A DNA stretch of 64,000 nt, taken from the NCBI GenBank assembly GCA_002269645.1, contig NIVC01000232.1, forward strand, positions 133,684-197,683, read 5' to 3'. Of this stretch, positions 13,308 to 57,100 are shown one piece after another. A model generated the notes under the pieces. It ran no database searches. It was not told the origin of the DNA and saw nothing but the letters and a program-made list of their open reading frames with translations. Source of the stretch: Macrostomum lignano (taxonomy: Eukaryota). The translations under genes were made by a program, and so were the position numbers. Position 1 is the first letter of the stretch. Every line of letters begins with the position of its first letter.

Positions 13308-14923
13308 ATGAAGCAGCAAGTAAAGGCGGCCTTAGAATCGACCTCGGCTCACGGTCTACCGAGAACCGTGAGCAGTAAACCGCTGCTCATCCGTCTAATA
13401 TGGGTGGCTTTATTTCTTCTCATGGCCGGCTGCTTTTTGCGAGGATTGTTTCTGTTTTCAATAAAGTTTGCTGCAAATCCGCAAACTAGCACTTTGGAAG
13501 CGAACAAAGTGGTGTTCCAGTTTCCCGATATTTACGCCTGTCACGAGACTCCTTTCTCTGCCAGCTACGCAGTCAATGTGGACAGGATTGCTGCAAATGC
13601 GATTAATTCAATAATGAACTCCACAACGCCATCCATACGGGAATACTTAGCAAAAAATATCTAAACGAGACAGACGAAAGCAAAACCATGCCGCCAAATA
13701 CATTCTTCTATGTATTCTCTCTACCATACTCGCTTATGGTCGACGCGCTGGCCCACAGGGCCGAGCAATCTGTCATCTCAAGTGGTGTCCTGTACAGGGA
13801 AAAACGTGGCACTCCCCACTACGAACATATTGAAGCGACCAGCTTCTTTCACCCGATTTACCTTCGGTGCTTCAAGTGGACCCTGGACAAAGAATTTCAG
13901 ACTGCTGTGTTGAAGTCCGGCTCGTGGGCCGGCATCACTGCAACGCTGCTCATCGACTCGAGCGCATCGGAGATCGAATCCAATGGCGCACCAATTCAGC
14001 GCATGGTGTACTCAAACTACAGCTTGCTCTCAGTCTGGGAGTGGTCTCTTTCGCTGCGCGACTACTTCGAGGCCGACAGGAGCGCCGGAATTCGAGTATT
14101 CCTCGCACCGCAAGGCGAATACCCGTCCGAGTTCGTGAGCTCGTTCGTCCTGGGTCCGGGAAAGCACCACACAGTCGAAATCGAGATGCTGCAGCAGGAG
14201 TACACAGCTGGCCAGTTCTCGTGTCGCGGTGACAGTCCCGCAGTGCAGTTTGTGAATCCGTACGATGACACTCCGTACAATCACACCTACAGCTATTCCT
14301 ACTGCTTCTACAAGTCATATCATGAAATCATTCAAAGATTGTATAATCTCTCGGGCGATATAGGACCTTTGCCATGGCCTCTTCGGGGTAAAAAATATGT
14401 CTTTAACCTGACTGGAGAGCCAAACTTTGCCAGTCTGAAGTTGAACCATTCTGACTATTCGACTATAGAAGACGCCATTGCTAATGTCGAGGAAAACTGC
14501 CAGTTGGATCGGCCGTGCAGCAGCCTTCAGTACCGCTCGAGTGTCTCCAGCGCTGACTGGCCCATAGACAGCTCCATCTTCTCCTTCATCAACAGCACGG
14601 TCAGGGAGGCCTGGACTCAAGCCAACGCCAGGAACCTCAGCGTGCCTGCTCTGGACTTTCTAATGACTGGAAACGATTCGGTTGTGTCATTGTATGTTCG
14701 CAAGAACCTGCTTAAAGTGCACTTTAAACCGTCGCAAACGCTAAGCGATAAAATTGTGTTCTCAAGGGACTATGGACTGGAGAACTTTGTTGCAGAAATT
14801 GGCGGCACTATGGGAATCTACCTGGGCATGTCGCTGCTCACCTTGTGCGAACTATTCGAACTAATTTACAATATTGTCGCTATCTACAAGTCGAAGAAGT
14901 CGCAGCAACAAGTTGAAAACTGA
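13308..14923 (+). CDS. DEG/ENaC subunit, copy 2 (one -1 frameshift in an A-run at ~13655)
   Basis: ORFs 13308-13664 and 13688-14923 join as LAKKYLNETDESKTMPP if one A is added to AAAAAA. All family motifs are present (SAHGLPR, FPDIYAC, AEIGGTMGIYLGMS). Confidence 0.9.
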
Positions 14924-20454: not shown

Positions 20455-22116
20455 ATGAAGCAGCTGTTTCGATCAGCGCTGGAGTCCAGCAGCGCTCATG
20501 GACTGCCGAGAACCGTCAGCAGCGAGAAACCACTGTTTGTCAGGCTGATCTGGTTGGCTCTGTTCTCCTTCATGCTTGTCTTGTTTTTAAACAGCCTAGT
20601 TCGATTCACTGAGAAACTCATCGCGAATCCGCAAACCAGCTCGATTGAGGCGAACTCCGTCACCTTCCAGTTTCCGGATATTTACGCCTGCCATGAAACT
20701 CCCGTGTCGGCCAGCTACGCGGTAAATGTAGACAAGAAGATGGCACTGGAGATCAACTCTCTATTAAGTAATACAACAAGGAAAATTCGACAATTTTTTA
20801 CAACTAGAAATCAGTCTGGTAGGGACGAAAACATTCGGCCGGTTACATTCGTTTACGTGCATTCGCTTCCCTACTCGCTTCTGGTTGACGCGCTGGCCCA
20901 CAGGGCCGAGCAATCTGTCATCTCAAGTGGCGTCCTGTATAGAGGAAAACGCAGCACTCCCCAGTACAAACATATTGAAGCGACCAGCTTCTTTCATCCC
21001 ACGTACCTTCGGTGCTCGAAGTGGACCCTGGACAAAGACTGGCAGAAAACCGTGTTGAAGTCCGGCTCGTGGGCCGGCATCACTGCAACGCTGCTCATCG
21101 ACTCGAGCGCATCGGAGATCGAATCCAATGGCGCGCCAATTCAGCGCATGGTGTACTCAAACTACAGCTTGCTCTCAGTCTGGGAGTGGTCTCTATCAAT
21201 GCGTGACATCTTTGAGCCAGACAGGAGCGCCGGAATTCGAGTATTCCTCGCACCGCAAGGCGAATACCCGTCCGAGTTCGTGAGCTCGTTCGTCCTGGGT
21301 CCGGGAAAGCACCACACAGTCGAAATCGAGATGCTGCAGCAGGAGTACACAGCTGGCCAGTTCTCGTGTCGCGGTGACAGTCCCGCCGTGCAGTTTGTGA
21401 ATCCGTACGATGACACTCCGTACAATCACACCTACAGCTATTCCTACTGCTACTACGCGTTGTATAACAAAGGTCTTCAAGAAACGCTTAACATGTCCGG
21501 AGGGATCGGTCCTCTGCCGTGGCCTTTGAGAGGGAAGAACCATGCATTCAATTTTACCGGCGAGCCCAGCCTGGCAGACACGTCCGCGGCTGAGGTGAAT
21601 CCCGACTTTTTTACTGAACTGCTTGACAATATCGATAAATACTGTCAGCTGCAACGTCCGTGCACCAGCCAGCAGTACAAGGCGAGCATCACCAGTGCCA
21701 AATGGCCAACTCAAAGCTCGCTTGCTTCCTTCATCAACAGCTCGGTGAAGCAGACCTGGACTCAAGCCAAGGCCAGGAACCTCAGTGTACCTGCGCTAGA
21801 CTTTCTGATGACAGGAAACGCATCCAGTGTCGCTTCGTTTATTCAAGAGAATGTTTTGAAAGTGCAGTTTAAGCCGCTTGCTGTACTCTGCAATAAAGTG
21901 GTGTTCTCAAGGGAATACGGCTTGGAAAACTTTGTATCGGATATCGGAGGCGTCATGGGAATTTACCTGGGCATGTCACTACTAACTCTTTGCGAACTGC
22001 TTGAGCTGCTGTACGACACTCTTGCTTGGTGCACTTCAAAGAGTAGACATTCCGCGAATGCAGTTGGGAGTCATGTCGCCTCCTCGAAAGCTACGTCTGT
22101 TGTAGAGATAAGCTGA
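20455..22116 (+). CDS. DEG/ENaC subunit, copy 4 (553 aa, intact; closest to copy 2)
   Basis: SAHGLPR, FPDIYACHE, SDIGGVMGIYLGMS. Near-identical central block shared with copy 2. Confidence 0.95.
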   Translation: MKQLFRSALESSSAHGLPRTVSSEKPLFVRLIWLALFSFMLVLFLNSLVRFTEKLIANPQTSSIEANSVTFQFPDIYACHETPVSASYAVNVDKKMALEINSLLSNTTRKIRQFFTTRNQSGRDENIRPVTFVYVHSLPYSLLVDALAHRAEQSVISSGVLYRGKRSTPQYKHIEATSFFHPTYLRCSKWTLDKDWQKTVLKSGSWAGITATLLIDSSASEIESNGAPIQRMVYSNYSLLSVWEWSLSMRDIFEPDRSAGIRVFLAPQGEYPSEFVSSFVLGPGKHHTVEIEMLQQEYTAGQFSCRGDSPAVQFVNPYDDTPYNHTYSYSYCYYALYNKGLQETLNMSGGIGPLPWPLRGKNHAFNFTGEPSLADTSAAEVNPDFFTELLDNIDKYCQLQRPCTSQQYKASITSAKWPTQSSLASFINSSVKQTWTQAKARNLSVPALDFLMTGNASSVASFIQENVLKVQFKPLAVLCNKVVFSREYGLENFVSDIGGVMGIYLGMSLLTLCELLELLYDTLAWCTSKSRHSANAVGSHVASSKATSVVEIS

Positions 22117-24635: not shown

Positions 24636-25250
24636 ATTTTTATTAGGAAATTATAGCAGAACGTTTAAACAAAAAAGCTATCTATGTGTCAGAGAATTAG
24701 TGTCCGTTATATACTCTCGTACGTTGTTTTGATTGTAAACGCGTAAAATTTAGGCTTGTATTTTATACTGATAAGAACTTTAGTAATGTAATTTTAAAAA
24801 CAAAAAAATCAATAGAAATTCTATTTTAAAGAATTTGAAGCGATTCAAGGTGTCGCATATTTAACGTTTTATACACTATAGTCTCTAGTTAGTTTCACTT
24901 TAGCTTACCTGTCAATCATCTGCCTACTGTGTATTAAGTAGAAGTGTATATAAAAGCGTATTGCAAAAATTAGCAGCTCATGTTGACATAGATTTGAGAA
25001 TCAAAGTCCATTTGCTTTGCCAACATTGCGCTAGCAGTTTAAAATTCGCTAAAACTTTGCTATGACACCTCAGTGCAGATAGCTGTTTGCTCGGCTTATG
25101 CAAACAGAAGATAGGTAAATGAGTCAGCAAATTCTGATATTTGCATCACAAAGCAAACGTAAATGGGATTATTAAATAGACCAAAAACCGTTAGAGAAGC
25201 TAAAGTTAAACCAGCTTGTGTTTCACGAACAGCCTTGGAGAGGCCACAGC

Positions 25251-26888: not shown

Positions 26889-28171
26889 CAGTCTTTGCCT
26901 AATATTTGCTACCATGACGGGTGGCCTTGGTATTGTATAAATAATTTGTTTATTGTGTACGAATCCTTGACTAAAATTTGATGTAAAATGAGCTGGAAGA
27001 GGCCTGCTTTTGACCTCTTTTGTAACTCAGAATGTATGCATTCTGATGCTGATGTCAGCATTCTCGGAGCCTACCGACAGTAGTGACTGTTGTTGCGGTT
27101 TCGATTCGGACATGTTGGACTCTCATCCCAGACCAGTTGTAGCATAAATGAAAAAAGTAGTGCGATGCGGTGGTTTTGTTGTTTGTCGAGTCTTGTGTGA
27201 AATTTGAAAGATTGCGTGAGGATCTTGAAGATTTCGGTGGCATGTGCTGGTTAATAATACATTGTAAATCAGCTCACTGAAATTTTCTGAAGTTTGTGGG
27301 CGTTATAACAAAATACTCCTTTGTTAAAACGAATTAACATACGGTAAGTAATATGAAATGTCAATATGTCATACTAATTAAATGCTGATAAACTAATGAT
27401 GCCGTATTATTTTTGAGGAACTTGCAAAATAATCTCATGACACACATTCTAGGAAAGTTTTTAAATTTAACGTGGTACTTTGGTGAGATTTTTCTTAAAT
27501 TGTACAGTACGGTACGCCACAAAATAAAGTACAGCAAGGTACGAGTAAAGCAATATACTAAAAATAAAAAGAAGATATTACTGTATACTAATAAACGCAA
27601 GCAGACTGACGCTCCTTACCTATTATTTTTGCTTTCTTTTTTCTTCTCTACTAGTAGACAATAGGTCTTAACAGAAGTTTAAAAAGCTCGAAATTTCACA
27701 CCGGTCAAAAGGAAGAATCGTTCATAAGCTAGAGACTTCGCTTGGTCCAAATGTCTTGCTAGTTTCTTCCGTTAACGAAATTAACGAAATTTTGGGCTTG
27801 TAAAAGCAACTCGCCTAAATGAGTATTACATTTGCCATGTGACTTGGGCTCCAGAAACTTGTGTTAGCTAACTAGCAATAATATCAATCAAACAAATTGG
27901 TTTACCAAAATGAAACTCATAGATGGAACTTAAGACGTCAGCACACAGCATCTGTTAGTCTAGATAATACTATACAAATATACTAGACGTTGTTCGCGGA
28001 TGTAATTAATATTTGGCTATAGATACCCTGACTGCAGGCTAATCAAATTCTCGAGAGTACCAAAGCAGACAAGCAGAGCAAACATTGTTGACCCTATAAG
28101 AGAAAACCCTAGGATCAAAATGAGACAGAATATAATATATCGAATTCGTGGAAACAGAGTCTGCCGAAATT

Positions 28172-31100
28172 ATGCAGCAGGTTAAGCTCGCCCTAACTCA
28201 AACGACTGCTCACGGACTGCCAAGAGTTCTCTCAAGCAAGCCAATCTATGTTAGAGTGGCTTGGCTACTTCTGTTCCTGCTCATGTTTGGTTTGTTTCTA
28301 GAGAGCTTCTGCAAGTTTGTCACTAAGCTGAGGTCCCGAAAAGTGACGAGTTCAATCGAATGGGAAGGCGAGAAGTTCCAGTTCCCGGATGTGTACATGT
28401 GCTTTGAGAATCCAGTGTCGGGCAGCTACTCCAGTTTCATGGACAGCGACACTGTGGTGGCAATCAATGATAGCTTTAGCCAATGCGTGGCCCAGCTGAA
28501 GCAGTTTGCGAATAAGCATAATTTCAGCGACGAATACACGGATCAAATAATCGCTAGTAGCAGCTTAATGTTTTTACAAGGTCTACCATACAAGTTGCTA
28601 TTCGACAAGCTGGCTCACAGAGTCGAACAAAGCGTCATTTCAAGCAGCATAATGTATCTACACGAAACTGGACTGCCAACTTCTGTTTCAGTAGAAACCA
28701 AGGCATTCAACCATCCGCTGTATCTTCGCTGCCTAAAGTGGACTATCAACAGTACACTGCAAGATAAAGTGACCGCGTCCGAGTACTGGGCGGGACTCAC
28801 TGTTACTCTGCTATTGGACACAAACTCGTCCTTTGTAAAACCTAGCCGTAGTCATCTTTCTTCGTGGAAAACCGGCTTCCCAGACGGCACAGAGATCCCA
28901 GTGTCCGACTGGCTGCTGTCAGTGAACGGCTTTGCAGAACCGGACAGATTGGCTGCAGTGAAGCTTTTTCTAAGCCCACCTGGCGACTATCCGTCTGAAT
29001 TTGTGAGCTCCTTCTCGCTGAGTCCTGGGAAATATCACACCGTCGAAATTGAAATGGTTAGAAAGGGGATGTCAACTTAAGCACCAGAATGGAGCCCGAA
29101 GTTCAGCTCCGGCCCAAACCGACTGCAATCGATAACTTGTCGGCCCAGACGACTAGAATCGCCGAGACATCCCATCCGGCTCCCTTCCTTGGGGTCCCAG
29201 GGGATAAAGGGGATAAAATGGGGATCTCATGTCAACTTAAGGCTCTGGAATGGAGCCCGAAGTTCAGCTCCGGACCAAACCGACTGCAATCGATAACTTG
29301 TCGGCCCAGACGACTAGAATCGCCGAGACATCCCATCCGGCTCCCTTCCTTGGGGTCCCAGGGGATAAAGGGGATAAAATGGGGATCTCATGTCAACTTA
29401 AGGCTCTGGAATGGAGCCCGAAGTTCAGCTCCGGCCCAAACCGACTGCAATCGATAACTTGTCGGCCCAGACGACTAGAATCGCCGAGACATCCCATCCG
29501 GCTCCCTTCCTTGGGGTCCCAGGGGATAAAGGGGATAAAATGGGGATCTCATGTCAACTTAAGGCTCTGGAATGGAGCCCGAAGTTCAGCTCCGGCCCAA
29601 ACCGACTGCAATCGATAACTTGTCGGCCCAGACGACTAGAATCGCCGAGACATCCCATCCGGCTCCCTTCCTTGGGCTGACTGAAACTCCTCTCGCTGGC
29701 CCCTAAACTGTTGCTCAGTAGGCTTTCGCTGCTGTGGTAAAGCGTTTTCTCTAGCATAAAGTCTGGCAACAAGGCTGCGTGGAAGAGCGAAATCAACAAA
29801 GCGAAGGCCGGCACCAGACCTTCGATAGCTACATATGTATCTTGGTGGTAAGCGTAGCAGCCCAGGAGTTTGAGCACTGCCATTACGCTCGTACATGACA
29901 ATCGCAGCCTGCAGTCCTACTTCCTGCTTTTGCTGACGAGTAGAAGCCAGGAAGAAGTTGCAATCCTGGATCTCTAAAACCAAAGCGATTGTCCGCTGCT
30001 GTCACACACTCTAAGAATCACGCGGTAGGATTTTGAATTATGGCGCGAGAAAACGACAGCTAGAAAAATCAAGACGGATGCCACCGACCGAATCGGTTGC
30101 TCCAGTTTTCTAGCGGCGTCGCTTGCCGAAACTTCCAACACTCCCGGCGGCTTGGATGTGTAACTCAAAGTCTCTCCAGGAGTCACCTTCGTAGCTATCG
30201 AGAACCTCCTTGACACGAATGTTTTGAATGTAATAATCGGCTTGATTTAGTTGATACGGATCCACCGAAACCTCTGACAAATTCACTGTGTGAATTCGGG
30301 GGAACCCCGAGCTTTTTGGATCCAGCGGGTTGACAGCAATCCATGCCCTTGTGTTAGCAGGGGGGCACGCTTCAGATCACAGTTGAAGTGCAGCTGCTCA
30401 ATTTCGTCAAGTTCGTTGGACAAGAGCACTCGGCGCATGAAATTCTGCCCGAATTCGAACAACGATAGCCCTGTCCATGACGGTGGAGCTGTTTAAATGA
30501 TTCAAAACCTGGATGCGCCCGGTTGTACTTTGCCATCGAGGTCTCGATAACAACGTCTAATCGGCAGGGCTCACTGAAGCCGGCTGACGGCAGCCACTGA
30601 TACGGTTTGTGCCTCTCGTTAAAACATTTGTCCTGCTTAATGGCAGCAAAGCAGCACATAGCGGAACATAGTGGCACAGCGGATGTCTCGGCGATTCTAG
30701 TCGTCTGGGCCGACAAGTTATCGATTTCAGTCGGTTTGGGCCGGAGCTGAACTTCGGGCTCCATTCCAGAGCCTTAAGTTGACATGAGATCCCCATTTTA
30801 TCCCCTTTATCCCCTGGGACCCCAAGGAAGGGAGCCGGATGGGATGTCTCGGCGATTCTAGTCGTCTGGGCCGACAAGTTATCGATTGCAGTCGGTTTGG
30901 GCCGGAGCTGAACTTCGGGCTCCATTCCAGAGCCTTAAGTTGACATGAGATCCCCATTTTATCCCCTTTATCCCCTGGGACCCCAAGGAAGGGAGCCGGA
31001 TGGGATGTCTCGGCGATTCTAGTCGTCTGGGCCGACAAGTTATCGATTGCAGTCGGTTTGGTCCGGAGCTGAACTTCGGGCTCCATTCCAGAGCCTTAAG

Positions 31101-32222
31101 TTGACATGAGATCCCCATTTTATCCCCTTTATCCCCTGGGACCCCAAGGAAGGGAGCCGGATGGGATGTCTCGGCGATTCTAGTCGTCTGGGCCGACAAG
31201 TTATCGATTGCAGTCGGTTTGGGCCGGAGCTGAACTTCGGGCTCCATTCCAGAGCCTTAAGTTGACATGAGATCCCCATTTTATCCCCTTTATCCCCTGG
31301 GACCCCAAGGAAGGGAGCCGGATGGGATGTCTCGGCGATTCTAGTCGTCTGGGCCGACAAGTTATCGATTGCAGTCGGTTTGGTCCGGAGCTGAACTTCG
31401 GGCTCCATTCTGGTGCTTAAGTTGACATCCCCTTTATTCACAGAGAACCAGTTTGACTGTCTGCCCCAACTGTCCGAAGTTCATTTTACGAATCCTTACG
31501 ACCTGTCTGCGCACAGCCATGCGTACAGTTATTCTTACTGCTACTACTATGAGTACCATCGGCAGTTTCAATCGACTTACAATATCTCTGGCTTAATAAA
31601 CCCTCTACCATGGCAACTAAGGAATCGTAACTATTTGTATAATTGTTCGGCTACGATAAACTATTTGACGATGGATGTCAAAAACGGTTCCCTTTCAGCA
31701 GCGATCCAGAGTGTGTCAGGCAATGTTCGGACTGCATGCAAAGGAAAACGACTTTGCAGCACACTGGACTACAGTGCCAGCATCTCCAGTGCCGACTGGC
31801 CGACTCAAAGCTCTCTGAATTCGTTTATCAGTTTCTCTGTGAGGCAGGCCTGGTCAAGAGCCAAGGCCAGAAACCTTAGCGTACCTGCGCTCGACTTTCT
31901 CATGACTGGCAACGCATCGAGTGTTGCCACCTATGTTCGCGACAACTTGCTTAAAGTTCACATTAAACCAGGTTGCGTTATGTGCAATAAGATCACGTTT
32001 TCTATTGACTATGACTTCTCAAGTTTCGTCTCAGAGGTAGGCGGCATCATGGGGATTTATCTGGGCATGTCGCTGCTGACTCTGTGCGAACTGCTCGAGC
32101 TGCTTCACGACATTATTGTATGGTATTGTAAAAGGGTCGATCGGGTGTCTTCTGAGGAGCGAGATTCTGATGGCAAAACTTCTGCATCATCCGTATCTGT
32201 TGTTGAAATCGACATGGACTGA
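28172..32222 (+). pseudogene. DEG/ENaC copy 7, interrupted by a 2368-bp transposon. Coding halves 28172-29064 and 31433-32222
   Basis: Removing 29065-31432 restores ATG GTT AGA AA|T TTA TTC ACA GAG = MVRNLFTENQFDC, colinear with paralogs (MIRSAFKEDQFDC). Both halves are otherwise stop-free. Confidence 0.92.
29065..31432. mobile_element. Non-autonomous foldback DNA transposon with modular 161-bp-repeat TIRs, inserted at AAA|TTT with no TSD (Spy-like)
   Basis: Termini GGGGATGTCAACTTAAGCACCAGAATGGAGCCC... and its reverse complement. Left arm 29065-29676 (~4 units), right arm 30681-31432 (~5 units), ~1 kb unique core. Flanks AGAAA and TTTATT rejoin in frame. Confidence 0.85.
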
Positions 32223-32486
32223 CGGCCAAATACGAGCGTTCCTTCGATTTAAAAAATCGAAGATATACATTCAACTAATACTACTTCTTTTGAAGCGAAA
32301 AATACAAATTAGATTGATGCATTGCAATTTTATGAAATTGCTCATGGTTTCAAACTCGCATTACGCAACAGAGAAAAAATTTCGAGCAGCTTTTAACTTT
32401 TTTTTGCTCACACGTTATGGAGACTAGGTTTCATGAAGTAAGATATCTGTAAAGTTTAAGGTTTGTGTGGTTTTGAGTATGTGAAT

Positions 32487-33053
32487 TTTAGGGTTTGTGA
32501 ATCTAGTGGTTTGTGAATCTAGTGGTTTGTGAAGTCTAGGGTTTGTGAAGTCTAGGGTTTGTGAAGAATAGGGTTTGTGAAGAATAGGGTTTGGTAAGTC
32601 TAGGGTTTGTGATGTCTATGGTTTGTGAAGAATAGGGTTTGTTAAGTCTAGGGTTTGTGAAGAATAGGGTTTGTGAAGGCTTGGGTTTGTGAAGTCTAGG
32701 GTTTGTGAAGAATATGGTTTGTGAAGTCTAGGGTTTGTAAAGTCTAGGGTTTGTGAAGTCTAGGGTTTGTGAAGAATAGGGTTTGTGAAGAATAGGGTTT
32801 GTTAAGTCTAGGGTTTGTAAAGTCTAGGGTTTGTGAAGAATAGGGTTTGTGAAGTCTACGGTTCGTGAAGTCTAGGGTTTGTGAAGAATAGGGTTTGTGA
32901 AGGCTTGGGTTTGTGAAGTCTAGGGTTTGTGAAGAATAGGGTTTGTGAAGTCTACGGTTCGTGAAGTCTAGGGTTTGTGAAGAATAGGGTTTGTGAAGGC
33001 TTGGGTTTGTGAAGGCTAGGGTTTGTGAAGTCTAGGGTTTGTGAAGTTTAGGG
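32487..33053. repeat. 16-bp minisatellite TAGGGTTTGTGAAG(TC/AA), telomere-like core
   Basis: Direct tandem units, with TTTAGGG at both array ends. Confidence 0.93.
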
Positions 33054-33109
33054 CCGTGCCATCTATCGCCCATCTCCTCACAAAAACAGGCCCTCTCAAA
33101 AAACCAAGA

Positions 33110-33340
33110 GATTGGGACGCCCACCAAGAGACAGGGGCGCCCACCATGAGACAGGGACGCCCACCAAGAGACAGGGACGCGCGCCCACCAAGAGACAGGG
33201 GTGCCCACCAAGAGACAGGGGCGCCCACCAGAGACAGGGGCGCCCACCAAGAGACAGGGGCGCCCACCAAGAGCTGTCAAACAAAAGGCAGGGATGCCCA
33301 ACAAGAGACTGAGCCGCTCACCATAAAGAGACAGGGTCGC
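33110..33340. repeat. ~20-bp minisatellite GGGCGCCCACCAAGAGACAG
   Basis: About ten imperfect tandem units. Confidence 0.85.
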
Positions 33341-36703: not shown

Positions 36704-37632
36704 TAATGGTGATGGACTGGGTGCTCAGGACCGGCCTGCCGACATCAGAGGACGGCTTTCTGCTGCAAAGGCGCACCAGTAGACGGCACCCGGAGAAGAA
36801 ACTGTCTGTCCTTGGCTACGCGGACGACCTCGCCCTGCTGTCTTCCACGGCCGAAGGCGCCCAACGGCTGCTGGACGGCCTGACTGCGGCGGCGGCGAGG
36901 GTCGGTCTCGTCATCAACGCCAGGAAGACCGAGGTGCTGACGGTGCCGCATGATCTACCCGCCGAGATTCGACTTCGAGACGGCGACGGCCCCGGGACGG
37001 CGCTCCCGAAGTGCCTTCAGTTCGTCTACCTCGGCGGACTGGTGCCGGACATCGGTGACGACCTAGCGAGACGGCGCGGCAAGGCCTGGGCTGCCTTCCG
37101 ATCTGTGCGGGCGGTGCTGCTCTCCGAGGCCCTGTCCGACGGCGCCAGGTCCCAGCTGTTCCAGGCGGTTGTTGAGACCGCCCTGCTGTACAATGCTGAG
37201 ACCTGGACGCTGACCGGGGCGCTTGAGGCGCAGCTCGACGCGGCGCATGCGGCCCTAGTCCGCGCCGCTTTCGGCGCCCGCCGCGGCCCTGGCAGCGAGA
37301 CAACCGAGTCCCTGTACAAACGCACAGGCCTGACGCGGCCTTCTGCCCTGCTGAGTCAGCGGCGCCTGCGGCTTGCCGGACATGTCATCCGGGCCGAAGC
37401 CTACTGCCCAGAGCCGCTGCAGGACGTCCTGCTGTGGACCCCGCAGGGACCGCGCAGGCGTGGTCAGGGACGATCAGCCCGCTACGTCGACCGCCTTTTT
37501 GAAGATGCGCGAGCACCCAGCCAGACGGCCGGTGTGAAGCACATTAGAGACCTGGCTCTGAAACGCGCGATTTGACGCTCCCCCCTCTTGGCCACTCCCG
37601 TGGCTGGCGTGGGGCGTAACTATTATTATTAT
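36704..37632 (+). mobile_element. 5'-truncated RTE-clade LINE (RT C-terminal part, ORF 36706-37575)
   Basis: LGYADDLALL (YADD), ALLYNAETWTL and RLRLAGHVIR motifs. GC-rich, (ATT)n tail, 9-bp TSD TAGTCAACC at 36695-36703 and 37633-37641. Confidence 0.93.
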
Positions 37633-45975: not shown

Positions 45976-47361
45976 CTACACATTCTCAGGCCGAAGACGA
46001 AGGTGTTTAGTCAGTGTGTTCTTTTCAACTACAGGTGTCTGATTGACAATATTGCCAGCATAATTGGCACGCTTATTCTTCAGCTCATTCGTCACAATCA
46101 TTCGCAGACATTCCAAATCCATGCGAATGGGCCGCTCAAGAACGTCGCACATTGTTTGTATAAACCAAGAGCCACTGTCCCCCACTCGGATAGCGGCAAA
46201 ACCCTGGAAGGTGGCATGGCACACGTACAGATCGCAGTTATCCTGCTGACTAGTAGGGGGACTCTCGCGGGGCGCCGGACCGTCCGCATAGACTTCCCGC
46301 GGCGCACTAGTAACAGCCTGTTGAAGTAAGTCGCCTCTGCAGCATTGGAAGAAAAAGATCTTCGGTCGGTCGCGCATGCAACCGTCAAGGAAGGGCAGAA
46401 CGATGTCATCCCAATACTTCAACTTTTGTCCGTCGGCGAGTTCAATGCAGTCCTCAATGCCGTGTGACATAACGAAAACAACTAGGCAGCTAAATTTTTT
46501 ATTTGCCTCCATCATCTCTTTGATAAGTTTAAGAATTTTTTTTACTTCTTGAACATCCGGATCGATTCGGCAGCAGAAGTGGTACCGAAAACTATTTTGA
46601 AACAACTCTTTCAACCGCTGAACATCCTTCTCCGAGCCGACACGAACCTCCCTACCGGGAATACGGTGCACATTGATGACGGCGCATACAGAATCAGCCA
46701 TAGGATACTCGCCAATCTGTGATAGTGCATTGTAATGCGCTGATGGACTTTCCCCTATATGAGCCGTAGAAGATGGGTCAATGGCAGTAACAGCAGCAGG
46801 AGCAAAAGCAGTTGGAGCCACTGTAACACTAGCAAATCTCTGGGAGTATCCCTGGATTAAGCTGTTCACGTTTGGCGACATATCGCCAAGAAAAAGGAGA
46901 GCTTTTACATTATCATCAGTGACAACTTTTTCCTCGATTAATTGCATCATCAAATCCAGAGCATCAGTCTCAATCAATTTTCCTGTGTCTGTCAGCTTCT
47001 GCTGCAGCAGTTTGCACAGTCTGGGCACATCTCCATCAGGGAACTGGACGGCAATGTTGAATAGCAGACTTCGTAGTGGTTTAATTCGTTTTTGTGACTC
47101 TTTTACTTCTGGCAGTGTGTTTAGAATGCAACTAGCAAGCAAGGGTATGTTAGCCGCCAGCACTGCCTCATAGAGCACACCAGGAGCAGCCGATCTGCCA
47201 TACCAGCGCTGCACAGCTGCCAGTAGCTGTTCACTGCTTCGAATCTCCAACAAAGTCTTGCAGCTTGGCTCAACTGCTAATAGGAAAACAATGTCCTTGA
47301 TATCCTTCAGAGATAGGAATGCCAGAAATGGTCTAATCTTGTTTCCTTGAGGATCAGGCAT
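45976..47361 (-). CDS. Initiator-type caspase with death-fold (probably tandem DED) prodomain; single coding exon; likely ATG at 47361
   Basis: RVGSEKD, CLVVFVMSHG (catalytic His), KIFFFQCCRG (catalytic Cys), linker EVYADG, DLYVCHAT, GSWFIQ. The N-terminal helical region PLRSLLFNIA...ALDLMMQLIEE resembles DED. Confidence 0.9.
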   Translation of the reverse strand: MPDPQGNKIRPFLAFLSLKDIKDIVFLLAVEPSCKTLLEIRSSEQLLAAVQRWYGRSAAPGVLYEAVLAANIPLLASCILNTLPEVKESQKRIKPLRSLLFNIAVQFPDGDVPRLCKLLQQKLTDTGKLIETDALDLMMQLIEEKVVTDDNVKALLFLGDMSPNVNSLIQGYSQRFASVTVAPTAFAPAAVTAIDPSSTAHIGESPSAHYNALSQIGEYPMADSVCAVINVHRIPGREVRVGSEKDVQRLKELFQNSFRYHFCCRIDPDVQEVKKILKLIKEMMEANKKFSCLVVFVMSHGIEDCIELADGQKLKYWDDIVLPFLDGCMRDRPKIFFFQCCRGDLLQQAVTSAPREVYADGPAPRESPPTSQQDNCDLYVCHATFQGFAAIRVGDSGSWFIQTMCDVLERPIRMDLECLRMIVTNELKNKRANYAGNIVNQTPVVEKNTLTKHLRLRPENV

Positions 47362-47493
47362 TGGGAAATATGCTGGTTTTAATTGCAATAACAGTAAAAT
47401 AAATTTTGGTTGAGTTTTTGTAGATTCATTAGCTTGATATTTAATATTTAAGCTCAACAAAGCAAAGCAAAAACATAATAAACTTAATTTTAA

Positions 47494-47935: not shown

Positions 47936-48390
47936 GGCAATCAATAGAAAGGGTACCAAAGAAGGGAAAATAAAAGCAATCAAGCAAACCAATATTTTGA
48001 CAGGGGCTATGGCTACTTGGTTTGGCCTTCTAAGATATATTTACTTTTTGAATACAAAATAACTTAAAATACTCATATTGAATATTATATTATATATATA
48101 TATATATATATAATTATACATAGAGAGGTACTCCTTTTATACCTTAAATATATAGGGCCCTGTATTTATATATACAGTCATGCACAAAAGTAAGTACACC
48201 CCAAGCAAAAATTGAGAAAAACTGTTAAAATTTCTGAACCGTCAGCTGTATTACAACAAAACTGCATCACAATGATCCTTATTGACTGGCATTTATTTTG
48301 ACACATCAAGCTTTGAAAAACTCGTTGTGGCTACGGAGCTATGGCAAAAAATGCTCAAACACACCTGTGCAAAAGTAAGTACACCCTGTC

Positions 48391-49413
48391 TTAATACTTT
48401 GTAGCTCCACCTCGTGCAGCCACCACAGCCAAGAGCCGCTTGCGGTAGCCATTCACCAGCGCAGCGCACCTCTCAGCGGGCACTTTCCGCCACTCCTCGA
48501 TGCAGAATTCGGCCAATTCCCGCAGATTCTTCGGCTTCCTTGCGTGAACCATCTTCTTGAGATCCGTCCACAGCATCTCGATCGGATTCAGGTCAGGGCT
48601 CTGGCTTGGCCACTCCATGACCTTGATGCGCCTCTGCTGCAGCCATCGCCGAGTTGCAGCGCTCGTGTGCTTGGGGTCATTGTCCTGCTGCAGTGTCCAA
48701 GCTCGTCCAAGACCGAGGTCATGCACTGATGGCTGCAGGTTTTCATCAAGGATCTGCTGATACACAGCCGAATTCATCTTCTCGGTGATGTGCATCAGCC
48801 TGCCGGTGCCAGCAGCTGCAAAGCAGCCCCACAGCATGATGCTGCCGCCTCCGTGCTTGACTGTCGGCTTCAGGTGTTTCTGCTCAAATGCGGTGTTCGG
48901 CTTGCGCCACACGCGCTGCTTCTCATTCCTGCCGAACAGCTCAATCTTGGTTTCATCAGTCCAAAGCACTGACTGCCAGTAGCTGTCTGGCTTGCTCAGC
49001 ATCGCATTAGCAAACTGCAGCCTGGCATCGCGATGTCGCTGCTGCAGCAGAGGCTTTTTTCTTGGAATGCAGCTGCGGAGGCCCGCGCGGTTCAGGGCTC
49101 GGCGAACAGTAGTCCTGTGCGGCAATAAGCCAGCTGCATTCAGCATCTGCTGCAGCTCGCCTGATGTTGCATTCGGGTTTTGGCTGACCTCTTGCGTGAG
49201 TTTGCGCAGCGCGCGAGCTGAAATTTTACTTGGCCGGCCACTGCGAGGCAGAGATGCTGTGGTGCCGTGCTGCTTGTACTTTGCGATGATGCGCCTAACC
49301 GTTGATACATGCACATTGAAGGCAGTCGATATCCGCTTGTAGCCATCGCCACTATTGTGAGCTGCTACAATGCGATTTCTTAACTGAACTGACAGCTCCT
49401 GGCCTCTTGGCAT
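48391..49413 (-). CDS. Intact Tc1 DD34E transposase, 340 aa
   Basis: MPRGQELS... paired-like HTH, GRPSK, WTDETK, TVKHGGGSIMLWGCF, QQDNDPKH-(34 aa)-SPDLNPIE. No stops or frameshifts. Confidence 0.97.
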   Translation of the reverse strand: MPRGQELSVQLRNRIVAAHNSGDGYKRISTAFNVHVSTVRRIIAKYKQHGTTASLPRSGRPSKISARALRKLTQEVSQNPNATSGELQQMLNAAGLLPHRTTVRRALNRAGLRSCIPRKKPLLQQRHRDARLQFANAMLSKPDSYWQSVLWTDETKIELFGRNEKQRVWRKPNTAFEQKHLKPTVKHGGGSIMLWGCFAAAGTGRLMHITEKMNSAVYQQILDENLQPSVHDLGLGRAWTLQQDNDPKHTSAATRRWLQQRRIKVMEWPSQSPDLNPIEMLWTDLKKMVHARKPKNLRELAEFCIEEWRKVPAERCAALVNGYRKRLLAVVAARGGATKY

Positions 49414-49617
49414 TGTCCTGGCGTGTATCAAGTCAATGACGAAGCGGCTGCATTGCACATAAGCTTTATAGTAGCATGAAAACCAGTAGCTGAGCCGATT
49501 GAGGGCAAGGGCAAGCAGGACTAAAGTCGCTGGTGACGTAACAGGCAATGAGGCGGCTGGCAATGTACTTATGGTGGCTCGCATCTGCACAGAGGAGGTT
49601 ATACTGGTAGTAAAGGG

Positions 49618-50721
49618 CAGTGTTGGGCACTTCCGTTACCGAGTAACTTGCAAATGGTAACGCAAGTTACTTTTTCGTAAAGCGTTCCTTACGCAAGTTA
49701 CTTTTTTATTTTAGTAACGGAGTAACGGTAAGTTACTCAAATTTCGGAAGTCCGTTACAGTTACTTTGCAACAATCGCAATATTTAAATTAAAAACTGAA
49801 ATGCTTAGCTAGTACGCCGGTTGTCACATGTTTTTGCATTTTTCATTCATAAATTCAAAATTAAGTGAATAGTATCATATGGTATTGCGTTTAATTAATG
49901 AAGAAATACTTGAAACATGTTTTACTTTGTTAATATTGGTAAAATATTTTCGCCTTTCATTGAGGCTTTTCATATTACCAATTCCAGAATCAGAATCGGT
50001 TCGGATCTTCCAAGAAAAACAGCAGTATAACTATTTAATTCTGTTGAATGTTTGACTGCCTTAACAACCTCACATAGCACAATTTTTCACTTTCTTCTTA
50101 GCGATTTTCATTCAATAATAAAAACTTTATAGCACGTATCTCCCTCTAGTTATGGAGACAAAAAGTTATACTTCACAAATTGGTTCTGATTCTGGAACCA
50201 GAACTAGCTATATGAAAAGGCCCATTTTCGTTACTAAAAATTTTCAAGTTTGATTCAAACAAACAACCAAAGAAAGAAATTCATCTGTAGCCTCCACAAG
50301 TCCCTCCACTGGCACTGCAGTACACTACACCATTTTATACAGTTCTATTTATTTTACTCTATTGAATTATTGATATTCGTTTATTTTATCATTTATAATT
50401 TTAATTATTGATTGCCATTGCCCATTGGTCCTTCTATTTGCCTCACATCGTGTCGCCAATTCCTGTCTCTGTCTGTTAATCGGTTAATCCCAATGCCCAA
50501 TGGCAAATTTCGGTAACAACAATGTGAAAAAATGTGCAATGTGAAAAAAGCAGAAAATTTTGTTAATAACATGGGTAACGGAAGTGAGTAACGGACAGTA
50601 ACTTAAAAGTTACCAGGTTTTTGTCTAAAGTTACTAGGCTAACGTAAGTTACTTTTTAAAAATTGGTAACTTAAGTTACAGTAACGCAAGTTACTTTTTT
50701 TAAGTAACTTGCCCAACACTG
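49618..50721. mobile_element. Non-autonomous hAT element nested in the Tc1
   Basis: TIR CAGTGTTGGGCA / TGCCCAACACTG, exact 8-bp TSD GTAAAGGG (49610-49617 and 50722-50729), and subterminal clusters of GTAAC/GTTAC motifs. Confidence 0.92.
49962..50223. mobile_element. ~262-bp PIF/Harbinger-like MITE nested in the hAT
   Basis: Termini G(A)GGCTTTTCATAT and ATATGAAAAGGCCC, 3-bp TSD ATT. A second copy lies at 52433-52692. Confidence 0.82.
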
Positions 50722-52432
50722 GTAAAGGGCAGGGTGTACTTACTTTTGCACAGGTGTGTTTGAGCATTTTTTGCCATAGCTCCGTAGCCACAAAGAGTTT
50801 TTCAAAGCTTGATGTGTCAAAATAAATGCCAGTCAATAAGGATCATTGTGATGCAGTTTTGTTGTAATACAGCTGACGGTTCAGAAATTTTAACAGTTTT
50901 TCTCAATTTTTGCTTGGGGTGTACTTACTTTTGTGCATGACTGTATATACATATATTTATATTTACTAATATGATTATTTATATTTAAAACTTTCAACAA
51001 TTATTAAAATTTTAAATAAAAAAACTTTGATTAGTATGAAATCTAATTTGAATAACTTAATCAAAGCTAGTTCATTTATATATATTATTAGGCCTTAAAA
51101 ATTGTGCAAGTTATATCCAATTGACCAAATTTAGACTAAGCCTAAAAGGAGCCTATTTAGTTTAGTAATTTACTTTACATTACTTTACTTAACAATAGTA
51201 GAAAATCCACATGAGGCATGGGAGGGCCACAAGTGGGAGGGATAGCCACTTCCTTTTTTGCTATGGCTAGACTTGCATATAAAGAAGATAAGCTCCTAGG
51301 GCTTTATTATAATTTTAGGCCTATTTTAAGCCTATCCAAAAAGTTAGACTTAAAAAATCCTAGATCCCTCATTATTACTGGTATTGATGATAATATAGTA
51401 AGTATATCTATGGCCTTGACTTAAAGGCTACATGCATGCTAAGAGGCAGAGCAAGAATATATATAAAATCAACTTGGCTTGCTATTAGAGCAAGCCTAAC
51501 ATTGAAATAGATATACTAATTATAGATAGGCCCTAAAACTCTTTAAAAGTCTAGGCTCATTGTATTATATATATTATTTATACAAACAAACTTTCAAATA
51601 ATTATTGAAATCTAATTTGCCTTTAGCTTTACTAGATCTAGGCCTTACTTTAAAAATAATAGGCTTACCTATAATGGTATAAGACCAACCCACAGCAAAG
51701 ATAGTAGATACAAATCTAATAGAAAGTTAGACATCTCTGATATATAACTTTTTTGGTTATAGGAACATTCTTAATATATATCCAATTTTGATGATCCTCT
51801 GAAGAATCCCTTTTTAAAAAAATGGTAGAAATAATAAAACATAATACAAGCATTATCTGTTTACTATTTTTGTTATCATTATCAATTTAGACATTTAGAG
51901 CTATGGCCTAGGCCATCTTGGTCATGTACCCCTACAACTAGGGCATACTGGCATAGGACCTAGGCCTTGAGTCTTGAGCATCCAACCAAAGCCTAGGCCA
52001 ATATTTCTTAGTGTAAAAAATTAATAAATTAATAAATAGGCCTAGGCTTATCCCTTAATTCTTTGAACCATTTTTATTTCATTTTATCTCAATCAGAACT
52101 ATCAATCAAATCAAACTGTCAGTATCAGTATAACTAGTCTTAATCACATTATTATCATGCCTTACTTATCATTTCAGAAGCATGCATTATGGGATCTAGT
52201 CACCTAGCCAAACATTACATAACAATCTGCAATCAGTCAGTGGGCTGATGGTCTGACTACTGTTGAAATGCAAACAAATTTGTCACGAGCTTCAATTATT
52301 TAAATACAAACAAACACAATTAAGTTCGAAATTAAAAATGCTCCTCAATTTACATCGACATGATAAATGCACGTAACGCTTATTGTAATTGATCATGACG
52401 ATAAATCATAAATCTATCAATTAGAGATCACA

Positions 52433-52692
52433 GGGCCTTTTCATATTGCTTGCTCTGGTTCCAGAACCAGAACCAATTTGTGAAGTATAACTTTTTGTCT
52501 CCATAACTAGAGGGAGATACGTGCTATAAAGTTTTTATTATTGAATGACAATCGCCAAGAAGAAAGTGAAAAATTGTGCTAAGTTAGGTTGTTAAGGCAG
52601 TCAAATATTAACAGAGTTTAATAGTTATACTGCTGTTTTTCTTGGAATTCCGAACCGATTCTGGTTCTGGAATTGGTAATATGAAAAGGCCC
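52433..52692. mobile_element. Second copy of the same MITE, in opposite orientation
   Basis: GGGCCTTTTCATATT...AATATGAAAAGGCCC with 3-bp TSD ACA. The body is the reverse complement of 49962-50223 with scattered substitutions. Confidence 0.88.
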
Positions 52693-54185
52693 ACAGTGTG
52701 AGGCTGTGCCTGTGAGGTAACTGCTGGTTGCTGCTGGTGCATGCTGAAAAAAACTTAGGCCTACCCTAGGTAATATTATTATATCTATCTCGTAAGTCTT
52801 TTCAGTGTTTTTTAGTTTCTATAAAATCTAGCTGGATGCATTTAAAACATATGCTATTGTGCAGTATTGCAAAGTTTGTTTTACTGTGCACGTTGCTTTA
52901 TTCTGGAGATCGTACATTTTTAGTTTCTTTAAACCGTGGAATTTTTATCATCGTATTTCGTGCTTTTACTATTTGCTTATATAACTCGTAGAAAATTGTA
53001 TAGTTCATCCGATAAAATTATCAAGAAGCAGCAAGCAGAGGCAAAGTATTTTACTGGGTAAGTTAAAACAGCGTAATTCTCTGGCAGCAATAGCAGAGCG
53101 ATAGTGCATTTTTTTATGTCAACATTTCATTATTAATATTAGACGACGTAGTATCAGTACGACAGTATCTCAGACGCAAAAACCACGGGCAGACGTTTGC
53201 TACAGCGTATTAGGCCTATTATTAACTTCTTTTTCGAACAAATTTATTTTGCAGTCGTCAGTCTGCAAAATTAGAAAAGTGCGCATTGCTTTTTGAAAAA
53301 CAACCTATCTATTTCATTTGATGAAAATTATTCAAAGCATTAATCATTATTAATTGTAATTAATAAAGCGATGCTATTCCTAATCTAATTATTGTTAATT
53401 AAAAGGCAGTTTTTTAAAACAAATACTTTAAACAGGTAAATTGAAGGATTTGAGTCACAAATCAGAATCACTGTAAAGGTGGCTGATGTTTTGTTTTTAT
53501 TTAGGTATAGCTATTTTTCATTTCTATACCTCGTGCCAAGGAATTTACACTTAAACAGTAAAATGCGAGATGGTATTTGCCACTAAACGGCAATCAAACG
53601 AACGTCTTGCTTGTCTAGACGTCTTACTCGTGAGCTCAGCACCAAAATTGATTGATTGAAACTAGTAACACAGTTAATGAATAATGTATAAAGATTAAAG
53701 CGCGCTGAGCTGGAATCAGTGCACTTTGCTGCAACTTAATTTTAATCTCATTATTGATTTAGTTCTTCTATAGTGTGCCCATGCAATGTAGTCAATGATT
53801 GGTCCCTGCTGACCTACTTGAGACAGACAAACTAGGCATGTGACATTAGGTTTTTAAAATCAATGTTGAATAGAAAACGTTTAAAACGTTCTACAGCTTC
53901 TCTATTCAACACGACTATCTTACTATCCCTTTCTGTCTATCATTTTCTCAGATTATATAAAGACTTCACTATATTCTTTCCTCTGGCGGACTTTTACGTA
54001 TTCATCTCCAATCTACCTTAGTTCGTTTACTGTTTTTTTCCTTCTTGCTCCCCGTTTCTCCGCCTCCGCCTTCCCTTTTCTCGCCGCGTTTAGTCTCGAT
54101 CTTTTTCAAAACTACCAAATAGTTTGAAGCCAACAAATTCGTTTTTTTTTCATTTTTTCGACATCTCACAACCGGGCACTTTAGC

Positions 54186-57100
54186 ATGTCTACAGCGGGC
54201 TCCGTGTACGCCGCCGACAGCGCCCGCGGCGCTCCATCTTCGAGCGTCGGTCGCAAAACGTCGATGGCGACCTCGGCTGACAGCCTTAGCGCTCGAGTTA
54301 TGACAGAGATAAGCGTCATCGGTAGTCTGACTTTAAACAGCGTTGTGTGAGTTAGCTTTTAAAGATATTTAAATGCATTTAGAAAGTCAGTGATACGCAT
54401 AGTTGATGACAGATTAGAAAATTTATTCAAAGAAACAAAAATAGCCCCAGCTAACACAGCCCTAGATAACAAAGCCCCAGATAACACAGCCCTAGATAAC
54501 ACGGCCCTAGATAACACAGCCCAAGATAACACAACCCTAGATAACGCAGCGCTAGATAACACAGCGCTAGATAACGCAGCGCTAGATAACACAGCCCTAG
54601 ATAACGCAGCCCTAGATAACACAGCCCTAGATAACACAGCCCTAGATAACGCAGCCCTAGATAACGCAGCGCTAGATAACACAGCCCTAGATAACGCAGC
54701 CCTAAATAACACAGCCCTAGATAACACAGCCCTAGATAACACAGCTCTAGATAATACAGCCCTAGATAACACAGCCCTAGATAACACAGCCCTAGATAAC
54801 ATAGCCCTGGATAACACAGCCATAGAATATACGCAGCCTTAGATAACAACAACCCTAGATAACACAACCCTAGATAACACAACCCTAGATAACATCAATG
54901 GATAACACAGCCCTAGATAACACAGCCCTAGATAACGCAGCGCTAGATAACACAGCCCTAGATAACGCAGCCCTAGATAACACAGCCCTAGATAACACAG
55001 CCCTAGATAACGCAGCCCTAGATAACGCAGCCCTAGATAACGCAGCGCTAGATAATACAGCACTAGATAACGCAGCCCTAAATAACACAGCCCTAGATAA
55101 CACAGCCCTAGATAAAAAAAGCTCTAGATAATACAGCCCTAGATAACACAGCCCTAGATAACACAGCCCTAGATAACACAGCCCTGGATAACACAGCCAT
55201 AGAATATGCGCAACCCTAGAAAACACAGCGCTAGATAACACAGCCCTAGATAGCGCAGCCCTAGATAACACAGCCCTAGATAACACAGCCCTAGATAACG
55301 CAGCCCTAGATAACGCAGCCCTAGATAACGCAGCGCTAGATAATACAGCACTAGATAACGCAGCCCTAAATAACACAGCCCTAGATAACACAGCCCTAGA
55401 TAAAAAAGCTCTAGATAATACAGCCCTAGATAACACAGCCCTAGATAACACAGCCCTAGATAACACAGCCCTGGATAACACAGCCATAGAATATGCGCAA
55501 CCCTAGAAAACACAGCCCTAGATAACATAGCCCTGGATAACAGCCTAGATAACATAGCCCTGGATAACACAGCCATAGAATATACGCAGCCCTAGATAAC
55601 AACAACCCTAGATAACACAACCCTAGATAACATCAATGGATAACACAGCCCTAGATAATACAGCCATAGAATATACACAACCCTAGATAACACAGCCATA
55701 GAATATACGCAACCCTAGATAACACTGCCCTAGATAACACAGTCATAGAACATATGCAACCCTAGATAACACTGCCCTAGATTCAGAAGATAACAATATG
55801 ACCAATCCTTTGTAGTAGCTATACTGCTCTACTCCTCATATTCCCTGATTTTCAGCGAGTTCCCAGACGAAGAATGCATGGTAGTCCGTCTGTCGCACGA
55901 CAAAGCCCTATGGGCTGTGGGCCTCAGCTCTGGCAAAATCCAGTTCTTTACAACAGAAAGCTGCACTCTGGTCTATTCGTTGGACCCACCGGAGAGGAAG
56001 GAGAACGAGACGGTCACTGGACTGGTCTTCGTTCCGCCCGATCCCAGCTCGCAGAAGACCGAGCGCCAGCATCTGATCCTAGCCTGCTACGCCACAGGAC
56101 AAGTTCGCCTGTGGCACTACACAGGCGTTGCTAATCCGTTGCTATGGACGCTGCAAGTTGAAGCTCTACCGCAGGAGGGCGAGTCGCACCCCCAGCAGCA
56201 GTCGGAAAAGTCCCGACAACGCGGCGGCAAAGCCAAGGAGTCTGAGAACCAGCAGTTGCTCTGCCTGGCCTGTTCGCCGGACTCTCAGCGTTTCGTTGTT
56301 GGCGGAGTCGGCGGAGAGATTCGAGTGTACGAATTCCGCCGGCACAACCTCATCAATGTGTGCCAGTCGAGCTATTCGGTCAACCGAGTCGATGGTCACA
56401 GGAATCGAGTCTGCGCACTGCTCTACCACCCGCTGGGCAGGCAGATGCCGGCAGACTATGGTCACGTGTTCCTGTCAGGCGGCTGGGACAACACCGTGCA
56501 GATCTGGGACGACAGGCGAGGCCACAGCCTCTGGGTGTACTTTGGCCCGCACGTCTGCGGCACTGACGCCTTGGACATTGATCCTCTGCAGAATCACATC
56601 CTCACCAGCAGCTGGGAGAGGCACAGGGCTCTGCTGCAGGTAAGCTGTGGAATGCATTTGGATCTCTGACCCTGCATTCTCTGACCCTGCATTCTCTGAC
56701 CCTGCATTCTCTGACCCTGCATTCTCTGACCCTGCATTCTCTGACTCTGCATTCTCTGACCCTGCATTCTCTGACCCTGCATTCTCTGACCCTGCATTCT
56801 CTTACCCTGCATTCTCTGACCCTGCATTCATCTCTGACCCTGCATTCTCTGACCCTGCATTCTCTGACCCTGCATTCTCTGACCCTGCATTCTCTGACCC
56901 TGCATTCTCTGACCCTGCATTCTCTGACCCTGCATTCTGTGACCCTGCATTCTCTGACCCTGCATTCTCTGACTCTGCATTCTCTGACCCTGCATTCATC
57001 TCTGACCCTGCATTCTCTGACCCTGCATTCTCTGACCCTGCATTCTCTGACCCTGCATTCTCTGACCCTGCATTCTCTGACCCTGCATTCTCTGACCCTG

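Follow-up and report, generated by a model that had tools for sequence, protein, structure and literature searches.

Spy elements, one of the groups of PHIS DNA transposons, are defined by terminal inverted repeats (TIRs), a single DDE transposase, absence of a target site duplication (TSD) and integration at AAA|TTT, with the AAATTT sequence left unaltered (Han et al., 2014; PMC4122938). Their TIRs range from 9 to 1,474 bp and show "no apparent subrepeat structure", and the terminal motif GGANNNNG is "relatively well conserved" (PMC4122938). The DDE transposase of the Spy clade shows the pattern D(79-80)D(44-62)E and an N-terminal helix-turn-helix. Their hosts belong to Arthropoda, Mollusca and Cnidaria (PMC11304231), with the addition of a rotifer (PMC4122938), and for one element, cgSpy, integration at AAATTT with no TSD was confirmed in human cells (PMC11304231). 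The other PHIS groups (PIF/Harbinger, ISL2EU, Pangu and NuwaI/II) have TSDs of TWA, AT in A|AT|T, ANT, CWG and TNA in C|TNA|G (PMC4482050). Long TIRs made of internal tandem repeats are a feature of foldback-type elements, such as Drosophila FB, Tetris (PMC4079207) and Tm1 (PMC3169594); Tetris shows TSDs of 8-10 bp and was assigned to Mutator (PMC4079207). In Galileo, of the P superfamily, the tandem repeats of the TIRs hold extra binding sites for the transposase (THAP) (PMC3688188). The element described here lies at 29065-31432 of a 64,000-nucleotide window of the flatworm Macrostomum lignano (assembly GCA_002269645.1, contig NIVC01000232.1, positions 133,684 to 197,683, forward strand; all coordinates below are those of this whole stretch), where it interrupts a DEG/ENaC channel gene. 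It shows foldback TIRs together with insertion between AAA and TTT without TSD, and with a probability of roughly two in three it is a non-autonomous foldback cut-and-paste DNA transposon mobilised in trans by a Spy-group (PHIS) transposase.

The target site was fixed from the interrupted gene. The 5' part of this single-exon gene, delimited by open reading frame (ORF), Pfam match and alignments, is located at 28172-29064 (+) and contains codons 1-297 plus 2 nt, and the 3' part, at 31433-32222 (+), runs through the stop codon. When 29065-31432 is deleted, 28136-32222 becomes one open frame of 572 codons with the translation ...EIEMVR-N-LFTENQFDC..., and from the first ATG (28172) the joined gene has a coding sequence (CDS) of 1,683 nt for 560 aa, which matches Pfam ASC (amiloride-sensitive sodium channel, PF00858) over the full profile (E 4e-37). 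The junction codons are AGA AA|T TTA (R-N-L); the four closest paralogues keep the R, and R-N is also present in the paralogue at 25218. Neither half of the interrupted ORF has a stop or frameshift. Restoration of the frame requires the removal of 2,368 + 3k nt, which excludes TSDs of 2, 4, 5, 7, 8 and 10 bp as well as a TTA reading. Between the conserved HTVEI and QFDC blocks, the seven intact paralogues of the window and an M. lignano protein (P0001) align without gaps, so k = 0 and a change of 3 or 6 nt is excluded. Since these eight homologues have equal length across the junction, the AAA at 29062-29064, which lies inside the inverted repeat, and the TTT at 31433-31435 are host bases, and there is no TSD; no direct repeat was found beside any symmetric choice of boundary at the element ends. 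The element is therefore inserted flush at the centre of a host AAATTT, with AAA on one side and TTT on the other, and no host bases are duplicated or lost, as judged on this single copy. AAATTT occurs only once in the 1,683-nt interrupted CDS, exactly at the insertion point, and the hexamer accounts for about 0.1% of positions in the window and for 0.03% of those in the paralogue CDSs, which puts the probability of landing on it by chance at about 10^-3. The restored channel ORF, the missing TSD and the AAA|TTT site had all been claimed in an earlier note made from the sequence alone, and all three held.

Three kinds of TSD were considered individually and rejected. For a TTA duplication of the PIF/Harbinger type (TWA), the flanks are AAA and TTT, and the only reading with TTA on both sides would take out 8 nt more and disrupt the frame. 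For the AT duplication of ISL2EU (A|AT|T target), there is no AT...AT at the element ends. The 8-10-bp TSD of FB and Mutator elements has no direct repeat at the ends, and 8 or 10 bp would break the frame, while a 9-bp TSD would give a protein three residues shorter than all homologues. Rescue by introner-like splicing was also rejected, since an in-frame GT(29057)...AG(31421) pair exists but pairs of this kind are no more numerous than expected by chance. The cryptic pair has its donor, ATG|GTTAGA (29057), in the host exon and its acceptor, CTTAAG| (31421), in the right terminal repeat; its use would splice the element from the mRNA and change VRNL to LTSPL.

The insert has 2,368 bp (53% GC) and is composed of a left arm, a core and a right arm. 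The left arm (29065-29676, +, 612 bp, 3.8 units) contains GGGGAT followed by units of 160, 161, 161 and 124 bp, and the right arm (30681-31432, -, 752 bp, 4.7 units) contains GGGGAT followed by units of 160, 161, 161, 161 and 103 bp. Tandem Repeats Finder places the 161-bp period at 29069-29676 in the left arm (3.8 copies) and at 30681-31428 in the right one (4.7 copies), with 98% matches in each; the earlier note had counted about four and about five. The two arrays are mutually inverted, and the longest inverted pair (29062-29676 and 30821-31435) has 615 nt. Compared in register, the arms show three mismatches in 612 nt (99.5% identity), all of them a C/A polymorphism at unit position 44; when they are offset by one unit (161 nt), only one mismatch in 569 nt remains. 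Read from the outside to the inside, position 44 is C,A,C,C in the left arm and A,C,A,C,C in the right arm, which is the mirrored pattern with a one-unit offset that had been noticed before. The arm termini show GGGGAT-GTCAACTTAAG-CACCAG and the internal junctions show GGGGAT-CTCAT-GTCAACTTAAG-GCTCTGG; in the outermost unit of the left arm (within 29065-29676, +), the variant GCACCAG replaces GGCTCTGG. Because the outermost units on both sides have this terminal-specific variant, the ends of the element are distinct from its internal unit boundaries. In a pattern search of the window, the terminal 17-mer GGGGATGTCAACTTAAG was found at 29065-29081 (+) and 31416-31432 (-) and at no other position, even with three mismatches permitted. 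The GGGGAT motif is present three times, in direct orientation, in each 161-bp unit, which also holds the terminal 8-mer GGGATGTC once, inverted, and an interrupted copy of the 17-mer GGGGATGTCAACTTAAG. Ten of the 11 occurrences of GGGATGTC in the window are inside the element, once per unit and in inverted orientation. The unit shows no special secondary structure (folding z-score -1.1). At its inner end (30681), the right arm starts with GGATGTC, which nearly repeats the terminal GGGGATGTC, and on the inside the two arms are truncated at different points, unit position 124 in the left arm and 103 in the right arm.

The core (29677-30680) is unique, with 1,004 bp and 50% GC, and shows neither a long ORF nor a recognisable domain: the ORF list holds only short chance ORFs for it, none of its six frames has a Pfam match at E<=1, and blastn gives no match elsewhere in the window or in a 21-kb M. 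lignano locus (L001, described below). The element is therefore non-autonomous. A 122-aa ORF that runs through the repeat array had no match in a protein search. The arrays, the inverted pair and the unique termini confirm the foldback element with tandem-repeat TIRs that the earlier note had placed at 29065-31432, and support its reality as a discrete TIR element of the foldback type.

With Spy the M. lignano element shares TIRs (612 nt, 99.5% identity) and insertion between AAA and TTT without TSD. The length of its TIRs falls in the range reported for Spy, its ends start with GG(G), as in cgSpy, and most described Spy copies are likewise non-autonomous. In the literature, only Spy combines TIRs, no TSD and AAA|TTT (PMC4122938, PMC11304231), and no other described TIR family fits, which supports the assignment. 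Among the other PHIS groups, TIRs often begin with GG or GGG (PMC4482050), resembling those of the M. lignano element, but these groups have defined TSDs, none of which is present here.

Several results weigh against the assignment to Spy. The terminus of the M. lignano element, AAA|GGGGATGT, agrees with the Spy motif GGANNNNG in two of the four specified bases: the GG is shared, while position 3 shows G instead of A and position 8 T instead of G. Platyhelminthes are outside the published host distribution, which includes no flatworm. No second copy of the element was found in the window (pattern search with three mismatches; blastn with word size 9), in L001, or in the JGI metagenome and IMG/VR viral collections, and neither the element nor the window contains a Spy or other PHIS transposase. 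In the Spy literature, no published data on excision footprints were found. A further difference is that the long TIRs published for Spy have no subrepeats, whereas those of the M. lignano element are tandem 161-bp arrays. The earlier note had called the insertion Spy-type: its insertion signature does match that of Spy, but membership of the group stays at the level of a probability, given a single copy, no transposase and a terminus with two of four bases.

The main competitor, considerably less probable, is a TIR transposon without TSD moved by a transposase from outside Spy, either of a new group or of another PHIS branch that converged on blunt integration at AAATTT. It is favoured by the fact that no transposase is linked to the element, by the loose fit of the terminal motif to Spy, and by tandem-repeat TIRs and a flatworm host that go beyond what is described for Spy. 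Nevertheless, among TIR elements only Spy has so far shown AAA|TTT without TSD, and the remaining PHIS groups have defined TSDs. The termini of Spy are themselves variable: those of five elements, derived from the primer sequences in the supplement of PMC11304231, are AAA|GGGCCTGG in cgSpy, which is experimentally active and begins with GGG, AAA|GAGCCAAG in cvSpy, AAA|TCGGGATT in hsSpy, AAA|GGACCCCG in crSpy and AAA|GGACAATG in ldSpy, so that GGG, GAG, TCG and GGA starts are found among the five tested elements. The only transposase in the window, at 48391-49413 (-), is Tc1-like and lies within its own 226-nt TIRs. Elements of the Tc1-like family duplicate TA on insertion, and for this reason this transposase cannot explain an insertion at AAA|TTT.

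A second alternative concerns the boundary. The inverted repeat extends 3 nt past the element ends, through AAA and TTT, because these are complementary to each other, and the boundary is thus unreadable from the repeat alone, which is why it was fixed through reading frame and paralogue length. The authors of Spy met the same ambiguity between host and TIR bases and settled it through empty sites (PMC4122938). If AAA and TTT were the outermost bases of the element, it would have 2,374 bp (29062-31435) and would have been inserted bluntly at GTTAG|ATTCAC, a target other than AAATTT. The protein of the empty site would then be two residues shorter than all eight homologues, and the paralogue at 25218 shows R-N in the aligned columns; this delimitation is very improbable.

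It is just as improbable that no transposition took place, and that the insert is an artefact of assembly (palindromic chimera or mis-assembled satellite) or else satellite or foldback DNA captured when a double-strand break was repaired. Assemblies are prone to errors in long palindromes and tandem arrays, and the number of units counted in each arm may be inexact. Against this, the termini are sharp, identical to each other and unlike the internal unit junctions, a unique 1-kb core is present, and removal of the insert restores the host sequence exactly, frame included. Moreover, artefactual foldbacks duplicate flanking genome sequence, and no such duplication is found here. Canonical Helitrons have no TIRs, start with TC, end with CTRR after a 3' hairpin and insert between A and T; a Helitron-type element would account for insertion between A and T without TSD, but it is contradicted by ends of GGGG and CCCC and by 612-bp TIRs with 99.5% identity, and is the least credible of the explanations.

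In its architecture the M. lignano element resembles the foldback-type elements FB, Tetris and Tm1, with which it shares long TIRs built from internal tandem repeats, a short middle domain without coding capacity, non-autonomy and an unequal repeat number between the arms. It differs from them in having no TSD, whereas they show TSDs of 8-10 bp and were assigned to Mutator. Long, internally repetitive TIRs are also shared with Galileo. Elements of the P superfamily duplicate 7-8 bp of target, and Galileo differs from the M. lignano element in this TSD and shows no sequence relationship to it. Foldback is a structural type of repeated origin, and not a family.

For a transposon mobilised by a Spy-group transposase, the mechanism proposed here, drawn from the Spy literature, would start with a Spy-clade DDE transposase, encoded elsewhere in the genome, that cuts both strands flush at GGGGATG.../...CATCCCC. 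The 3'-OH ends would be joined to phosphates that lie directly opposite each other, without stagger, in the middle of AAATTT, and since such blunt joining would leave no gap to fill, no TSD would be produced. The repeated GGGGAT and GGGATGTC motifs may be extra transposase-binding sites, each 161-bp unit being a putative array of them by analogy with Galileo. The length of the arrays would drift through unequal exchange; the one-unit offset between the arms is most simply read as the addition or loss of one unit in one arm by this process. Seamless excision is put forward as a hypothesis, in which a flush cut and direct end-joining would restore both AAATTT and the gene. The predicted empty site would read ...GTTAGAAATTTATTCAC....

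The insertion is inferred to be young and to produce a null allele of one DEG/ENaC paralogue. The earlier note had deduced a recent insertion from the near-perfect units, but this homogeneity is weak evidence of recency because concerted evolution also yields likeness between units; the undamaged halves of the host ORF are better evidence. The insertion would then be a natural, possibly reversible null allele of this paralogue.

If the assignment to Spy is true, the host range of the group extends to Platyhelminthes, foldback TIRs occur together with PHIS-type integration without TSD, in a third superfamily beside Mutator and P, and M. lignano becomes a possible carrier of an active Spy system. 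What would be new in that case are the tandem-repeat (foldback) TIRs and the flatworm host. A bolder proposal, which we regard as doubtful, is that a system of transposition without TSD is currently active in M. lignano and moves foldback elements, with tandem-repeat TIRs that offer the transposase multiple landing sites; this would be either the first flatworm Spy lineage or an unrelated transposase that converged on blunt integration at AAA|TTT. M. lignano serves as a model of regeneration, and tools for its transgenesis are being sought. An active system of this kind would offer an endogenous, possibly scarless tool for insertion and excision in a regenerating flatworm, and would mean that the foldback architecture evolved in the PHIS superfamily as well. 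The present evidence consists of one well-characterised copy with the signature of a family already described and used for gene transfer. The idea of a scarless vector, raised in the earlier note, is not new and adds little, since gene transfer into human cells already works with cgSpy (PMC11304231).

The interrupted gene is one of eight single-exon DEG/ENaC (Pfam ASC) paralogues arranged in tandem at 10895-35684 (+), with 43-75% mutual identity. The paralogue at 13688-14923 is short at its N-terminus (411 aa) and is 75% identical to the copy at 20455-22116. The only database relative of the channel is a single M. lignano UniRef protein, P0001 (49% identity), and all eight paralogues appear to be absent from the NCBI annotation of M. 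lignano. A region of short repeats begins about 230 bp beyond the stop codon of the interrupted gene and contains a 16-bp minisatellite (32448-33053) with about 38 copies and a strong G-over-C skew, and a 20-bp repeat (33103-33273).

Farther downstream, a caspase ORF (45976-47460, -) is 99% identical to M. lignano BOX15_Mlig032996g1. The contig that carries this gene, NIVC01000105.1 (GCA_002269645.1), is colinear with 37805-58128 of the window at 94-98.6% identity, and on these sequences the two would be different haplotypes, homeologues or assemblies of M. lignano. L001 is the 21-kb locus of that contig, and it ends 6-9 kb short of the insertion site of the foldback element. Window and contig coordinates are offset by 24.6-26.4 kb, and by extrapolation the allelic site would fall at about 53-56 kb of NIVC01000105.1. 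A Tc1/mariner-like element with 226-nt TIRs and an intact transposase ORF of 340 aa (48391-49413, -) is located at 48163-50955 of the window. It is absent from the colinear NIVC01000105.1 (L001 7664-7679), where the site is TA-rich, and is therefore an insertion polymorphism. This element is possibly active, and its polymorphism is consistent with recent transposon mobility in the M. lignano genome.

The same region contains a pair of AT-rich inverted repeats (49961-50223 and 52433-52693), with 177 nt at 95% identity and adjoining stretches of 58 and 38 nt; one arm of the pair lies inside the Tc1-like element, suggesting that elements were nested in one another or rearranged. An array of tandem repeats (period about 23 bp) covers about 365 bp in the window (57764-58128) versus about 2 kb in the NCBI haplotype (L001 1-1973). 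The neighbouring ORFs at 54359-55487 (-) score as pentapeptide repeats, probably owing to repetitive DNA. Between the channel array and the colinear region, a GC-rich block (36-38 kb, 60% GC) contains an ORF (36706-37575) with a weak match to RVT_1 (E 2e-6, below the Pfam cut-off), which is probably a fragment of a retroelement.

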